Numbered from the stretch's first letter, positions 4,343 through 53,815 are shown. The stretch is DNA of 64,000 nt from Blepharisma stoltei ATCC 30299 (GCA_965603825.1 CBFDEM010000010.1:372001-436000); one strand, 5' to 3'. Numbers and translations are program-made. The notes: generated by a model not told the origin, from the letters alone.

Positions 4343-7060
4343 ATGGAGAGAGCAATTGAATCTTCAAGGTATGAAATAGGCAGCAATCAGTCAAATCCAG
4401 AATTTTTTTGAAAACTATATTATAAGATAAGGTTCGGACATGAGCTTGACGAAATTTATAAAACCACAACGAAACCAGTAACTGTAGACAAGGAATTGAG
4501 AGTGATATTGAAAGATTTCAGCGTTGAAATAGGCTGGGATATAGAAGAAAGTCATGAGTATTTTACTCAAAGGCTGAATCCTCACGATTTTCGAGACTTT
4601 TTAAACTTATACGATGTAAGCTTGGACGCCTTAAAAAGGAGGCTTGGCAATTACCTATTAGAAAAAATTTATGAGATAGAAGGAAACGAAAATACAGAAA
4701 TCAGCGACTTTTTGCATGCAATCTGGGACAAAGAAAACCCAGAAGAATTGATAGACTTGCGGTCAAGAAGAAGTCTTATAAAGCCAGTTGAAGACATTAA
4801 AAAAGAAGAAAATGACGTTGAGTCATACAAAAATAAAAAAAATCAGTCGCCAGAGCAGACTATTAGGTCAAATGAAAAAGACATGAAAAATCAGTCACCT
4901 GAACAAAGCATAAGGTCAAAGGATAAGGAAGGAAGTCCAAGGAAAAAAGAAGGAAAAGCTGGGCTGACAGATGAAAGTGTTAAGCAGCTAAAAGAAGATA
5001 TTGAGTCTGCAGTTTCGAGTATCAAAAAAATTGATAGTGAGTTTGCAAGCTTTATGACGGAAAAACAGAATATTTCGGTGAAGAAACGAAAAGGTAGTGA
5101 TAGCTCTGAAGATTCTTCAAATAAAAGTGAAGCAGAAAAGAAGTTTGCTGAAGCTAGTTTTAGATCGAAAGTAAAGGACTCTTCAGAATCGGAAAGGGAA
5201 AGTGCTAAAAGAAAGCCGCCAGCAGGTAATCAAGATAATATGAAAATAAGAAAAGTACAGAAAGAAGATTCACAATCAATAATCAGACGATCGACTGAGC
5301 CTAAAAGAGAAGAATCCCCATCTTTTCAAAAAGAAGCCAATAAGCTAGCAAAAGCATCATCTATTAATAAAATTCTCACGAAGCAAAATGAATCATTCAC
5401 AAAAGATAGCTCCAAAAAAGAACAAGGAACTAGGCATGTAAAGACTCCAAGTCTCCTTATGATTTATCAAGAAACAAAAGATCCTCAAGACGAAAGCGTT
5501 TACGATAGACAAGCCAACGTTTTAAGATCTACTGAAATTTATCCAGTCTATAGCGACTTAGTGTTAAAAGATACATGGCTCACAAAGCTCCTAGAGCCTC
5601 TTACTCAAGAAATTGAAGAAATTTTTTACTCCTACGACCACAAAGAGGAAAAACAAGTTGATGTTCGTCAGCTGAAAAATGTTTTCAGGGAAATCATAGC
5701 AATTGCTCATGTTGAAATTTCTGAAAACAACTACGAAGATTTTGATAAACTAGTCAACCAAGAATTTATGTCAAGTATAAATCACAGCTCATTAAGTAAT
5801 ATGCAAACAAATAAAGCAAACTTCAGCCAGTTTATGAAAATTTTGCAGAAATGGTCTTTAAGAAATGAGCCTGAAGCAAATGATTTAGTAGGAAAAATAA
5901 AAAGAGCAATTAAAGAGTATGAAAATATTGTTAATACATATGGAGGATCAAGTGAAGATACTACTCCTGTAGAAACTTTAATTCAAGAGCTTAAAAAAGA
6001 GCTTGAAGCTCATGTAGCTATAAAAGAAGAAAAATCTGCTAAGCAAATCGCTGATGAACAAAGGAAAAATATTACTGAATTATTCCAGTTTTATTCAAAA
6101 ATACAGAATATGATGGGTCAAGCACCTACATTTGAAGAAATCAATGAGAGTTATACAGTGTGAACTGTCGTCAAATTTTTTAAATTTTTGACGGATTTTA
6201 ATGTTATAGGGAAACAAGAAGAAAGAATAAGGCTTTTAAGCAAAGATCAAGCACAGCAAATTTTCAAAAAGCTAGCAAATAATTCTAGGCTGCTGAGCGA
6301 AAACCAGTTTATTGATGCGCTAGATAAGCTTGCTGATCTGTATTATAATAATGAATACGATACAATTTATAACACTTCATATGCGAGTTTAACAATACCT
6401 GAAAAAAGGATACTTTTTTACAAGTTTTTAGAGCTCAGCAATAAAAATGCCTTATTAAAGAAAGCTAAAGGTTTTCGACTAGCATTCAGCAATGAAAGAG
6501 GCGGCGCTCGAATCCCAGAAAACGATGCCAGCAAACACTACGTTTTCAAAATGTCCGCTGAAAAGAAAAAACAACTCGAAGAGTGGCGAAAAGAAAAGCA
6601 ATCAAAGTCAGCTCCTCAATCAAATATAAAACTGAGGCCTGAACCTCAAAAAAATATCAATGAAATTAAAGTGACAATGCCCACTTCAGGATATGCAAAA
6701 AGAAGAAAGGCTAAAAAAATTGTCAATGGAGAAGAATCCATGATAAAAGCTGAAGAAGAAGAAGAAACTGTGATCCAGCAGCCAAAAATCCCACAACAAC
6801 AAGTTTTGACGCTGCAAGGAATCAATGGGATGGATTATAGGGAATTTGATGAAGATGGAGACCTAAAAGATTTGATTACAGAAGATAATGACGAATATTT
6901 AGATCAGATGTGGGGAATTACCAAAAAAGAGTCACAGCCAAAAATACAGGAAGATATAAAACGATTCCAAGGAATTATGAAGATGCATGATGAAAAGATC
7001 GCTAAGGGCATGAAAGTGCTAGAAAAAGCAAGGCATGGATATGGATATGCTGCAAGATAA
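4343..7060 (+). CDS. Large charged protein (~905 aa) with a p25-alpha/EF-hand-like helical domain in the C-terminal third
   Basis: Single frame from ATG 4343 through two TGA=Trp codons. WTVVKFFKFLTDF...AQQIFKKL...ENQFIDALDKLA resembles p25-alpha (tentative). Confidence 0.7.
4838..4920 (+). repeat. Two-copy 48-nt-period coding repeat (KNQSPEQ[T/S]IRS)
   Basis: aaaaatcagtcgccagagcagactattaggtcaaa versus aaaaatcagtcacctgaacaaagcataaggtcaaa. Confidence 0.7.
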
Positions 7061-27640: not shown

Positions 27641-29326
27641 ATGGGTAAATCCGCTGAATTTTGTGTAAAATCTAAATAGGTTTCTGATAGCGGAGCAGAA
27701 TGTGCGCTTACATTGTAATAATCACTCAGAATTTTCCCTCTGATAACTTGGCTAAGTCTAATCGTTGTATGGATATTCTCTAGAAAAGCTCAAATAGAAG
27801 ATGCTGACGAAATTGAGGCAAATTATACATTTAACCACATAGTCAAGCTTACAATGTCAATGCTGTGTGCTGGAACTTCAGTGGCTTTATTTTTCTGGAA
27901 TGTAATTTGTGAGGATACTGTTGTTGGAGGACCATTAATAGAAGATATAGGAGATGCATTTACATGGATCATGGCTAGTATATTGCTAAGAAAAGAATAT
28001 CTAGCCACAGGCAGAACAAGTTTGGCGCTGAGGATATGATGGGTTGTGGTAATGGTAGAAGAAATTCTTATAATAACCCTTATGAGTGCTTATGACGGTG
28101 GGAGGCCTTATTTTGATCACATTAGGATTGAGCTTGTAGTGGCTTTACTTTTATATACAGGCTTGGCGTTAATTGGATACTTAAGACCAAGCGATATGGC
28201 CTTAGACAAAAAAGATGTAGTAGAGGGGTACTATAAAAAAGTTCTTGACAATTATACAAGAATGCAAACACCTCAGGAGATGAAAGAAGATATATGGGGC
28301 AAACTTGAGGATATAAAAGTTATTGAGGAAGAAGAGAAGAAGCTAAACTTAGAAAAAAATCTGTCAATGAGAGAAAAAATTATGACTATTGATGTAGATG
28401 GGTATGAAATTATAGATCAAGGCGGAGAGCCAGCAATATATTATAATGTGACAGTCAGGAAAGGAAAAGTTGGGAAAATATTAGAAAAAACCAAAAGAAA
28501 ATATGAAGAATTTGCAGGACTGTATAAAGAGCTACAAATTCGGTTCCCAAGCTTATCTTTTCCTCCTCTTCCACCGCTAATTCCAAGCCAGTAAGTTTTA
28601 TATAGAAATCGGTACCGTGAAGATATTCTTAAAGGGCGCCAAAAAGTCTTTGATGAGCTTATGAAATTTTTGGTCGTTAAAAATATTCCTCTTGAAGCCT
28701 ATAAAGATTTTTTGCTTCCAAACTCAGCTCTTGCCTTTTATGGCAAAGAAGCAAACAGTGAAGTTTATTTGCCTTCTTTCCAAGCGCCTGTGGTTGTCTC
28801 AGTCGAAGAAGTCAAAGAAATCAAAGAGATAAAAGAAATTTCTGAAACAAAAGAAACTATAAATTCAGAGCCAAAATCTCCTAAAAAAAAGAAAAAAGAA
28901 ACCAGCGAAATCTCTATGGAGCCTATTTCTCCATCGCCAATAATAGAAGAAAAAAGAGAACTAAGAAGCCAAAGTTTAATAATAGAGCCAGCTTGCCGAG
29001 TAAATATTTTATCTACCTATGAGTCAGGCTCAGGATATAGCAGACACACTATGTACGAAATTGGCGTGAAATATGGAAAAGAGCATATAATATGCGCTCA
29101 CCGATTCAAAGATTTCAAAAAACTCTATGAAGAACTGAAAAAAGATTTCAGCACCTTGCCTGAATTGCCGTCATCTGGGCTTACTTTTTCATCAACTGAT
29201 CCAGAAATTGTGTCTGAAAGAAGAGATAAATTAGAAAGATTTTTAGCTGAATGCGTAGAAAACCCAGCAATCAGAAGTCATCAGGCTGTAATGGACTTTC
29301 TTGAGCTTAATAAATCTACAAGCTAA
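27641..29326 (+). CDS. Multi-pass membrane protein with two PX (phox homology) domains; 3 introns
   Basis: Hydrophobic N-terminal segments; PX1 KRKYEEFAGLYKELQIRFPSLSFPPLPP; PX2 HRFKDFKKLYEEL...LPELPS...ERRDKLERFL. Confidence 0.8.
27665..27679 (+). other. 15-nt intron GTAAAATCTAAATAG
   Basis: GT..AG, A10, removes an in-frame TAG. Confidence 0.78.
27715..27729 (+). other. 15-nt intron GTAATAATCACTCAG
   Basis: GT..AG, A10, removes in-frame TAA TAA. Confidence 0.78.
28591..28605 (+). other. 15-nt intron GTAAGTTTTATATAG
   Basis: Joins the two parts of PX1 in frame. Confidence 0.88.
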
Positions 29327-39589: not shown

Positions 39590-40609
39590 TTAGTTAGACG
39601 AGAAACTTTCTAAATCAACTATTTCATCTGTTAACCGAACATCATAAGTAATCGCTGCAATAAGCTCTTCAAGGCTAAAAAAGGTTGATTCAGCTCTTAC
39701 ATAAGCAATCAGCGTGACTTCGAGCTCTTTATTATATAAATTATTTTCAAATGTATGCAATATATATGCCTCGATGCTTTTTTGAGTGTTTCCATAGTAA
39801 GGATTTCACCCAATTGACACAGCTGTTTTATAAAGAGTGCTGTAATCGTCTGCAAATCTTGCAACTCCTGCATACACGCCTGGGACTAAATCATTTGCAT
39901 TATTAAGGTTAATAAGGTCTAAATTTGCAGTCGGAAACCCAAGCTCTTTGCTGCCTCTTCCAAAACCTGGAATAATATTCCCTCTAACAGTAGAAGCGTT
40001 TGGGAGTCTATAATAAGCTTTTCACTATTGATAATCATCATAAGGATCAGGCTGGCTTGGTAAAATTGCTCTCAGGCTATTTAAACTTTCTTCATTTCCA
40101 GGCTCGTTGGGGAATTTTACATGTGAGACTTGAAATCCGTTCTGTTTTAGCATCTGGGCTGAATCGAAGTGTGCTACAATAATTTGATGCTCATGCTGCT
40201 TGATGTGGAAGAGATCCTCTAAAATAGTGCTGGCAGAAGTATAGATGATCTGTTCAGATAAGTCGCCTAGCAATTCTTTAAAAGGCTTTAAAGACTCAAT
40301 TGTGGTTTCCAGAACGTCTTTTTCAAAGAAACTAAGCAACTTAATTTGTGAAGAAGAATCTGATAGCGCTTTTAACGTCTGATAAGAATTTATAGTGGGC
40401 CTAATAGTATTTAAGTAGGATAGCAGCATTTCTCTAGGGACATCTGCATTTAAAAGTCTAAGTCCTTCTATCAGCGTTTTATGATGTATCTCAGACTTTA
40501 GCTCATACGCAATTCCTTCACTTGATCTCGCCAGACAAAACTGAAGACCCCTTATATTGAAAATTAATTCAGCGTCGAAAATTACAATTTTCTTCGCAAA
40601 GGCCATCAT
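39590..40609 (-). CDS. RFK: HAD-like domain plus riboflavin kinase domain in one frame, interrupted by in-frame TAG at 40025-40027
   Basis: Downstream half: GFGRGSKELGFPTANL, GVYAG, SIGW(TGA)NPYYGN, IEAYIL, YVRAE. Upstream half begins KIVIFDAELIFN (HAD motif I-like). Confidence 0.8.
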
Positions 40610-51700: not shown

Positions 51701-53815
51701 CCCTTTTGGGGGTAAAGGGAATTTTCTGTAAAAATCTAATATTTGATTTCTAAAATTATCATACAAATAAAGTGATGATTTTTTACAATTAACAATTTTT
51801 GAAAGACTCTCTGTAAAATCTTTAAGAGGCTCTTCTGAATATTGTATTGAAAAAAGGCTGCTTTTTAATCCTTCTAGTTTCTCAAATGGCATGCTAATAA
51901 CTGTTGTGATGTTTTTGACAAATCGTTCTTTTTTACTATTTTTTGATCTAAGCTCTATCATATCAAAAGATTCCAATCTTCCTCTAGATAGTGGAATTGA
52001 TCCTGAGCGATGAAAATTTCCTCTGATTTTTAATTTTGATTCCTCAAAAAAGGTAGGAGGACTTTTCATTAAAATATCAGCAGATTTTGGCTCAGTAACT
52101 ATATATGGTCAATCAGGCAGGAATTGCATAAATAAAGAATCAAAAATCCTACCTAACCCCATAGTGAATTTTTCAAGCATCCAAATCTCATCTTTAGAAA
52201 ACGGAGGAGACTCCCTTGTAATAAGAATCACTCCTGTAACTGGATCTTTTAATTTTTCTCCCAGAATTGCAGTGCATAATACATCTTTGTCTTTATAAAT
52301 ATCAATATCTCCTAAATCATCAAATTCTTCATTAGGAAGATGCACAGTGCTTCTCAAATCATATGCATTTCATAATAAAGTTTCTTGAGACCTCGGCACC
52401 ACAGTGATATCAGAAAACTCCGAAGTGGTTCACAGGCTTTTTTCATGCTGATCTGCAATATAAACACTACATGAATCCACTTGTATTATTTTGCAGATTT
52501 TTCGCTTAATTTCTCTGATCATTTCTCCGTAATCAAATAACTTTCCAGACTTTTTTAAGGTATAGTGATAGAAGCTGTTAATAATTCCTTTAACTTCTTC
52601 AGATGTTATTGAGTTTTCAATGAATTTAGTCTTATCGACGAAGTTTTGTATAGAAATATTGCCAAGCATCTTGCAGATTTCTTCACCAAGCAACTCGTCT
52701 ATTTTTTTGAATTCTTGGATTTCTCTGAAGAAAAATAAGGCACCAATTTTTTCATTTTGAGGAGATTTTATTGGACAAATTAAGCAGTTTTTATATAAGG
52801 AGGAAACTGTTTTGGAACATAGAGGCTCACTTTGTAAATCACGGATGTTTATGATTTCATTATAAGAGATCACTCGATATTCAGAGAATTTTTCGACTGC
52901 TTCTAAATCTAGTTTTTCGCCTGCAGATATAAAAGTATGAAGGCTTCCATGGTTGTTTAGCAGGAGTACTGTAGATACGCTGTCCATAATATCATTCATA
53001 ACCTTTATTATGCTGCAATTTACAGTAGGATTTGCTTCTAAAATATATTGGATTTCAGTTAATAATCTTTTTCTTCTAGTAATGTGATTCACAGTTTTGA
53101 AAAGATCAATTTGGTCTGACAGAAAGCTGGCGCTTTGTGAATAATCGAATTTCACATCAAAATATTTATTCCTAGAATGCAAAATTTCCCCAAAAAGTCT
53201 TCCAATACTTTGAACAGTATTGACATCCTCATTTGTAAACATATTAGCTGAGTTCGTTCTTTCCTGCTTGTTAAACAGCTGCACCACGCCATACAGTTTC
53301 TGATCAATGTCCTAAATATTAATTACAAATAATGGAATGCATGCAGTCGATGTAGGCTTGGTAGCTGTTTTTGTAAGTGTTGAATAAGCAGACAATTTAA
53401 TAGAAAATTGTGCATAAAATACTGATGTGTGTGAATTGGTTATAAGTATCGGCTCTTGCTTGGACGCAGTCAATCCTGGTAAAGATGTTGTTTCATCAAT
53501 TATTAATGTTTGTATTGATTGTTTTCTTCCGCATACCCGGAGTGCATTGTCCTCAAGTAATAACAATTCAACTCAATTAGAATGAGTGAAGGATTTAATT
53601 AAATTTACAAATGTGTCTTGGATGCTTTCAATTGAGGCTTTTTCTGGATCAATTATTTGTGACAGCTTTTCGAATAAACTCGTCGACAGTAAATTTTCTT
53701 CTTCCTTTATTGAAACATGTCGAGGAGTGTAAAGAGTGGTTGATCGAGCCCCACAAAAAAATTCTGATTTCCTTCTTGTATTTTTTCTGGTAGAACTTCG
53801 GGTGAATTGCTCCAT
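48722..53815 (-). CDS. Class I cyclic-nucleotide phosphodiesterase with multiple GAF domains and a PAS-like domain (~1690 aa); 1 intron
   Basis: Seven ORFs in one frame joined by TGA=Trp and intron 53312-53326; FHNFYH, CHDLDH, LEQHH, GTDMSKH and HCADL; GAF GIAGFVA..DKRFDPKID..LQLINK. Confidence 0.9.
53312..53326 (-). other. 15-nt intron GTAATTAATATTTAG
   Basis: Restores the GAF strand CIPLF/DIDQKLYGVVQLFNK. Confidence 0.88.

Follow-up and report, generated by a model that had tools for sequence, protein, structure and literature searches.

A riboflavin kinase gene interrupted by an in-frame UAG in Blepharisma stoltei: a candidate case of readthrough at a recent nonsense codon

The Arabidopsis protein AtFMN/FHy carries an N-terminal HAD-fold domain and a C-terminal riboflavin kinase (RFK) domain of Pfam family PF01687 in one polypeptide (Sandoval and Roje 2005, as cited in PMC9678776). 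Here we describe a locus with the same domain order in the heterotrich ciliate Blepharisma stoltei ATCC 30299. It lies on the minus strand, from 40609 to 39590, of the stretch of 64,000 nt that we analysed (the window), and is identical to a record of assembly GCA_914767885.1. Between its two domains stands an in-frame TAG, which we tentatively read as a recent nonsense codon tolerated through readthrough.

Several described systems are close to this second feature. Near-cognate readthrough, in which Gln is inserted at UAG or UAA (PMC13192750), shares with our locus an internal UAG that follows CAA, lies far from the poly(A) tail and precedes a long open reading frame (ORF). Context-dependent codes are known from Condylostoma magnum, of the same class as Blepharisma, and from karyorelicts (PMC4967479; 10.1101/2022.04.12.488043). 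Their 3' untranslated regions (UTRs) are very short, and the principle that the B. stoltei locus may share with them is a proposal: a stop codon far from the poly(A) tail is translated, whereas one near it terminates. Unlike in Condylostoma, however, UAA and UAG are not general sense codons in B. stoltei (256 domains, see below), and the locus would represent a single leaky site, not a reassignment. In the stop-directed +1 frameshifting of Euplotes (PMC10235951), an internal ciliate stop distant from the 3' end of the transcript likewise does not terminate. In B. stoltei, in contrast, the downstream domain is in the same frame with no frameshift, and we found one site where Euplotes has thousands.

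The fused gene, its relatives and its N-terminal domain

The reading frame opens with an ATG at 40609, and its last codons before the TAG are GAT TAT CAA. An earlier note on this DNA had described a 194-aa ORF with this ending and a frame that continues through a TGA, and we reproduced that layout on the minus strand. For homology searches the B. stoltei protein was queried in pieces split at the stop, and no joined sequence was used. The kinase pieces on either side of the TGA match Pfam Flavokinase PF01687 at model positions 4-61 and 63-123 of 124 (E 2e-10 and 5e-13), and each alone exceeds the cut-off. In a six-frame search of the genome the whole kinase stretch scores 104.8 bits (cut-off 19.6; E 1e-28; model 4-123 of 124) with one TGA inside. 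GFGRGS and FPTANL are invariant columns across all fusions, SIGWNPYY is present and aligned with the eight relatives introduced below, and the catalytic Glu of IEAY aligns with IEAH, VEAH or IESY in the relatives. With the PF01687 match and all four motifs, PTAN included, in register, the view that an apparently intact RFK lies behind the TAG is borne out. Both in-frame TGAs sit at Trp positions that are invariant or conserved among relatives. Translation of codons 196-339 contains zero Met codons, in agreement with the claim that no in-frame ATG precedes the kinase motifs. A 143-codon open, Pfam-significant kinase right after a stop is not attributable to chance. Taken with the alignments, the locus reads as one conserved gene for a two-domain protein, a divergent HAD-fold domain followed by a riboflavin kinase, and the predicted activity of its product is phosphorylation of riboflavin to flavin mononucleotide (FMN).

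For comparison we assembled eight other fusions of this N-domain with RFK, apparently all from heterotrichs, one cluster of which includes Fabrea salina. A word-index search with the 194-aa piece led to an orthologue, which we call L003, whose protein is 57% identical and whose 336-codon ORF runs through the kinase, with TTG TGA at the junction. L003 uses TGA for Trp, and gene order around it is conserved, with Adaptin_N upstream and Peptidase_M20 downstream on the opposite strand. Clustering at 90% identity groups the B. stoltei protein with one other sequence, of 267 aa, encoded on a 1086-nt contig (L005) that is 93% identical to B. stoltei in nucleotide sequence and has a continuous 339-codon ORF. 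Since L005 ends in poly(A), we take it to be a transcript. Its codons 195-196 are TTA TGG, the alignment is gapless around the junction, and its stop (TAG) falls at the same codon as the B. stoltei TAA. The exhaustive search of representative proteins and a second word search added six further, distant full-length fusions of 324-384 aa.

Across the eight relatives, the residue aligned with the TAG is Leu in five and Ile, Ser or Thr in the others, and it is followed by an invariant Trp. Because all eight carry a sense codon at this position, the UAG is a recent, lineage-specific nonsense substitution, one base from TTG. The earlier note had named orthologue alignment as a check on its proposal, and the outcome goes against conservation of the UAG: TTA stands in the 93%-identical transcript, TTG in the 57%-identical orthologue, and codons for Leu, Ile, Ser or Thr in the six distant fusions. 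Conserved programmed readthrough is therefore not supported by these alignments. Two adjacent genes are ruled out, as the kinase part is without Met, the relatives are continuous, and L005 is a single transcript.

The features of the locus are collected in Table 1. The deposited gene model (L004:3001-3864) stops at the TAG after 194 aa, with the kinase half left without annotation, and because the model halts there the deposited B. stoltei proteome is without a riboflavin kinase. The L003 gene has met a similar fate for another reason: at L003:4355-5365 a standard-code gene caller stopped at the TGA (Trp) and produced a misleading '194 aa' product in place of the true ORF of 336 codons. Public gene calls for organisms with the Blepharisma code are systematically cut at TGA.

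Table 1. Features of the B. stoltei locus in window coordinates.
Feature	Position	Strand	Basis
HAD-fold N-terminal domain, codons 1-194	40028..40609	-	Translation; AlphaFold2 and Foldseek; equals the deposited 194-aa protein (P0001)
In-frame TAG, codon 195	40025..40027	-	Aligned position is Leu (5), Ile, Ser or Thr in eight related fusions
TGA (Trp), codon 196	40022..40024	-	Invariant Trp column of the fusions; TGG in L005, TGA in L003
Riboflavin kinase (RFK) domain, codons 197-339	39593..40021	-	Pfam PF01687; alignment of relatives; dN/dS 0.056 against L005
Second TGA (Trp), codon 268, within SIG-W-NPYY	39806..39808	-	Conserved Trp position
TAA, codon 340, normal stop of the full-length gene	39590..39592	-	435 nt 3' of the internal TAG

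The N-terminal domain is far more divergent from described families than the kinase. No Pfam family reached threshold (the best were Hydrolase_6 at E 0.0015 with one relative and HAD_2 at E 0.15 with another), and a profile search of the PDB returned no match. An AlphaFold2 model built from a seven-sequence alignment (pLDDT 82, pTM 0.79) places a strand at residues 8-12 and a helical insert at 19-85, after which strands and helices alternate, giving a Rossmann-like core with a cap after strand 1. The top 50 Foldseek matches in the PDB all belong to the HAD superfamily (TM-score 0.4-0.63, probability 0.99-1.0), and on the strength of the model we assign the domain a HAD fold. The nucleophile Asp12 (IVIFD-A-E-L, at the end of strand 1) is invariant across the fusions. 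At the second Asp position of motif I, Fabrea and five other fusions (P0005, P0006 and P0019-P0021) have Asp, whereas B. stoltei and its two closest relatives have Glu, so that the 'DAE in place of DxD' remarked on earlier holds as a distinction between Blepharisma-type sequences (D-A-E-L) and other heterotrichs (D-x-D-L). The motif II residue Ser93, which lies where strand 2 ends, does not vary among the fusions, no conserved motif III Lys was found in the fusion alignment, and the acidic residues after strand 4, in the region of motif IV, vary (AHFDS, AHFES, NDLS, ADEDS, SHLPS). Just past the nucleophile Asp lies a family signature, RGLQFC[LY]AR, which in B. stoltei reads RGLQFCLAR. Phosphatase activity of the domain is uncertain.

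Only 5 relatives of the N-domain were found among 1.8 billion representative proteins; the three full-length ones are the same fusion, and none has a Pfam HAD_2 match. By these searches, the combination of this domain with RFK is so far confined to Fabrea and related sequences (P0004, P0005, P0006, P0019, P0020, P0021) and is without a Pfam model; it is an undescribed family. In the plant type, in contrast, the N-domain is recognised by Pfam HAD_2/Hydrolase models (as in the green-algal P0025), and when the heterotrich N-domain profile was compared with the N-terminal 235 aa of a Coccomyxa HAD_2-RFK protein, hhalign gave a probability of 0.3% (E 0.2). Unlike in AtFMN/FHy, the second Asp of motif I is Glu in Blepharisma, and an FMN hydrolase role is putative. 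The parallel that had been drawn with the plant bifunctional FMN hydrolase/RFK therefore stands for domain order, a HAD fold and then RFK, and falls for sequence kinship of the N-domains. On the sequence comparison, the likeness is limited to architecture and fold, and the heterotrich fusion may have arisen independently of the plant type.

Two neighbouring observations concern the germline-inclusive assembly. At window position 40335|40336, within the N-domain coding region, that assembly holds a 279-bp eliminated sequence (L004:3275-3553) that the somatic window does not contain. With its TTA direct repeats, inverted termini (CTCCCCCC...GGGGGGAG) and 25% GC, the insert looks like a miniature transposon-derived internal eliminated sequence. 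In the neighbouring Peptidase_M20 gene there are two germline-only inserts bounded by TA, of 109 bp and 82 bp (window 38261|38262 and 38073|38074; L004:5628-5736 and 5925-6006).

Riboflavin kinase genes in the genome and selective constraint

The B. stoltei genome (41.46 Mb, 64 contigs) contains one match to PF01687, which is this locus. Genome profile searches for the archaeal cytidine triphosphate (CTP)-dependent RFK and for the RibF-type enzyme found none, and when the Fabrea fusion protein was aligned to the genome only this locus answered, over residues 4-323 with '2 TGA, 1 TAG' inside. By homology search, then, the genome has no other riboflavin kinase gene, whatever the type. The possibility of another RFK gene had been raised in the earlier note; since there is no second one, production of the kinase from this sequence requires that the UAG be decoded. 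The genome also holds a single gene for a eukaryote-type flavin adenine dinucleotide (FAD) synthase, the FMN adenylyltransferase that follows RFK in the pathway (L035:1429-2199; G000:C57, minus strand), with one TGA at a Trp-like position and human FAD synthase as its best PDB match (E 2e-15). Retention of this gene indicates that B. stoltei needs FMN.

Compared with L005, the kinase half has 4 non-synonymous and 15 synonymous codon differences (non-synonymous rate dN 0.012, synonymous rate dS 0.214, dN/dS 0.056), with no further stops and no frameshifts. The corresponding values for the N-domain are dN 0.029 and dS 0.345. These rates point to strong purifying selection on the kinase half. From the substitution data, any loss of kinase constraint could have lasted for no more than roughly a tenth of the B. 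stoltei branch; outgroup polarisation of the four non-synonymous kinase differences was ambiguous at three sites.

The same data bear on the possibility that function has truly and recently been lost in this long-cultured strain, that FMN or FAD is obtained from food organisms, and that the kinase half has not yet decayed. Blepharisma is a phagotroph, the TAG is derived while the relatives are intact, the deposited annotation ends the gene at the TAG, and a loss of constraint confined to so small a part of the branch fits a very recent event. However, the genome offers no alternative RFK while it retains an FAD synthase that requires FMN. As a rule, cells import riboflavin itself, not FMN or FAD, and neither yeast nor mouse can do without RFK. 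We consider a true loss of function quite unlikely.

Stop codons in Blepharisma and routes around the UAG

The weight given to the internal TAG depends on how often such codons occur in this genome. According to the genome paper (10.1101/2021.12.14.471607), UGA encodes Trp in Blepharisma, introns are tiny and mostly of 15/16 nt, and at least one non-canonical (GT-GG) intron is documented. By the published account, the assembly rests on 145x PacBio HiFi coverage of a strain described as 'virtually homozygous', with 1277 heterozygous single-nucleotide polymorphisms. A further study (10.1101/2023.10.09.561518) gives the code as UAR = stop and UGA = Trp, and reports that UGA is decoded by a near-cognate tRNA-Trp, with signs of competition between eRF1 and tRNA. 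Published frequencies of in-frame UAA/UAG for B. stoltei are at most 0.09%, and a published remark on rare in-frame UARs aligned to Gln in Blepharisma domains mentions possible readthrough. In our window, long ORFs appear only with TGA as sense and TAA/TAG as stop, and many genes end in TAG. The RFK transcript L005 itself terminates at UAG, and a 3' UTR of about 25 nt separates that codon from poly(A). UAG is a genuine terminator in B. stoltei, and the statement that it is otherwise a stop in this organism held up in the window ORFs, in the literature and in the control domains described next.

As base-rate controls we used 134 protein-kinase and 122 kinesin domains of the genome, 256 in all. 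TAA or TAG occurs in 10/134 protein-kinase domains, and all 12 codons lie within 15-nt GTA...AG introns. Among the kinesin domains 19/122 contain such codons, and 20 of the 23 lie within 15/16-nt GTA...AG introns; of the other three, two lie in 15-mers of the forms GTG...AG and GC...AG, and one lies at the ragged end of a fragmentary gene. In total, 34/35 in-frame TAA/TAG codons fall in tiny introns of 15 or 16 nt and 1/35 at a gene-fragment edge. Unexplained in-frame stops are not a background feature of the assembly. A Condylostoma-like code with UAG = Gln is ruled out by the window ORFs, the published analyses, the 256 control domains and the stop of L005 at UAG.

Two of the kinesin genes, L017 (G000:C44:259870-260838, minus) and L026 (G000:C11:1009351-1010310, minus), have in-frame TAGs inside 15-nt non-GTA elements, GCAAGCTCTATATAG and GTGACTTTAATATAG, which from their sequences are likely GC-AG and GTG-AG tiny introns. 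Within the window, the other same-frame ORF pairs resolve into two introns and one pair of separate genes. At 28592-28594 (+) and 53312-53314 (-) the stops between same-frame ORFs lie inside canonical 15-nt introns (GTAAGTTTTATATAG and GTAATTAATATTTAG), so each of these ORF pairs is one gene.

The controls also speak to the possibility that the TAG is a consensus error in the assembly and that the true codon is Leu, for example TTG. One wrong base would give the same picture, and the relatives have TTG or TTA. Yet the assembly rests on 145x HiFi reads, and the 256 control domains, with zero unexplained in-frame stops, leave room for very few errors of this sort at most. When a HiFi consensus is wrong, the fault is usually an indel in a homopolymer; here the surrounding sequence (CAATAGTGA) is non-repetitive and the change would be a T-to-A substitution. 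An error of this kind is the least probable of the explanations considered here.

Splicing offers no ready way around codon 195. Among GT-AG elements of up to 30 nt none covers the TAG, and a tiny intron at this codon is thereby ruled out, in line with the earlier statement that no 15/16-nt GT-AG intron lies there. One 18-nt GT-AG element overlaps the site (GTGAAAAGCTTATTATAG); its excision would recreate a TAA and delete the conserved WKAYY. The only splice rescues that work formally, on paper, are GC-AG elements of 11, 14, 35 or 39 nt, in which conserved residues are deleted or replaced.

Rescue at the level of RNA or of initiation could take several forms: a non-canonical splice, a separate kinase ORF, base editing of the UAG, or non-AUG initiation. 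Concretely, an in-frame 39-nt GC-AG element could be spliced out, translation could start at the ATT codons 212/213, or an out-of-frame ATGATG 14 nt upstream could be joined to the kinase frame via an 11- or 14-nt GC-AG element. That such GC-AG solutions exist on paper, that a kinesin gene of the same genome has an intron-like 15-nt GC-AG element, and that the genome paper records at least one GT-GG intron all lend this some credit. However, the lengths of the elements are atypical in a genome dominated by 15/16-nt GTA...AG introns. The 39-nt option removes the invariant Trp, and the 11-, 14- and 35-nt options swap the conserved junction for unrelated residues. The L005 mRNA is colinear through the region, and because the Pfam match begins near codon 205, initiation at codon 212 would cost the kinase fold part of its first strand. 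As to editing, we know of no A-to-I mRNA editing system in ciliates. Rescue by any of these routes seems very unlikely, if slightly less so than a consensus error.

Decoding of the internal UAG

We favour, at somewhat less than an even chance, the reading in which the kinase is made by tolerated readthrough of a recent nonsense UAG; the readthrough itself, its efficiency and the residue inserted are what we infer. In the ATCC 30299 reference, TAG has taken the place of the Leu codon (in relatives TTG or TTA) where the two domains meet. In some ribosomes a near-cognate tRNA would decode the internal UAG, Gln being the usual insertion at this codon, and ribosomes past it would read the UGA as Trp and proceed into the kinase domain. 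The products would be mostly the 194-aa HAD-like protein together with some of the 339-aa full-length enzyme. The internal UAG is 435 nt upstream of the normal stop and the 3' UTR is short, so it should lie about 460 nt from the poly(A) tail, and under a model of poly(A) proximity it would terminate poorly. Such a model comes from Condylostoma, a related heterotrich in which termination efficiency has been proposed to depend on proximity to poly(A) (PMC4967479). A Gln codon on the 5' side influences readthrough of UAG, as a study of QXQ contexts in yeast reports (PMC13192750). A low yield would be tolerable if the enzyme is required in small amounts, and since relatives can have Ser, Thr or Ile at the junction position, a replacement of the Leu there would plausibly do no harm.

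Several points weigh against this reading. On the 3' side the UAG is followed by UGA AAA GCU, which is no known leaky context. The TMV-type context, for comparison, is CAA-UAG-CAA-UUA. Of the leaky-stop context claimed earlier for this site, then, the 5' CAA fits and the 3' UGA-AAA does not. Unlike the described cases of near-cognate readthrough, B. stoltei has UGA AAA in place of a Gln codon or CARYYA, with no conserved signal and no structure, and whereas those cases insert Gln, the ancestral residue at the TAG is Leu. Starting at the UAG, a stretch of 100 nt folds no more stably than its shuffled versions (z = +0.58), which gives no sign of a stimulatory RNA structure. As the UAG is a stop without conservation, selection for two products is not indicated. 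A premature stop some 460 nt from the 3' end may trigger decay of the mRNA. We found no literature report of a cognate UAG-reading tRNA in B. stoltei. Finally, a kinase half that is intact and looks constrained would be seen just as readily after a very recent mutation, or alongside coexisting wild-type copies.

The last of these is the main rival. Here a second germline allele, or part of the somatic chromosome copies, would keep the Leu codon, and the consensus would show TAG only. Normal kinase would come from the intact copies, without any need for recoding. The somatic nucleus is highly polyploid, and the assembly collapses its copies into one consensus; the heterozygous sites reported for the strain mean that some positions vary; a recessive null can persist while heterozygous even where the gene is essential and single-copy; and TTG -> TAG takes one base change. 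The germline-inclusive NCBI record also has the TAG, but it derives from that assembly and adds no independent confirmation. Set against this, heterozygosity is just 3e-5 per site, and the protein collection holds no B. stoltei-type sense variant: the 90% cluster consists of the 194-aa and 267-aa proteins, in a collection that B. stoltei read sets may lie outside of. We judge coexisting copies unlikely, but they retain a larger share of the probability than any other rival.

It is tempting to take the favoured reading, readthrough of the UAG, one step further by analogy with Condylostoma. Although its code is 'UAR = stop', B. stoltei may have kept a position-dependent termination of the Condylostoma type, in which a UAG about 145 codons from the 3' end of the mRNA is decoded well enough to supply the sole RFK. 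This is speculative, and we regard it as improbable.

If a wild-type allele exists, the finding shrinks to an ordinary heterozygous nonsense variant. Whether the codon is a leaky stop on which the cell relies or a hidden heterozygous variant, it is in either case a real and unusual nonsense codon. Should every DNA copy and the mRNA carry the UAG, a free-living eukaryote would be relying on the decoding of a stop codon for an essential enzyme that it encodes in a single copy. Stop codons have been reassigned repeatedly in ciliates, and the leading explanation is weak termination far from poly(A), an idea for which species with 'conventional' UAA/UAG stops have offered no natural test. The locus would then supply one and, if position-dependent termination does operate there, would be a natural 'ambiguous intermediate' of stop-codon reassignment, at a single essential locus.

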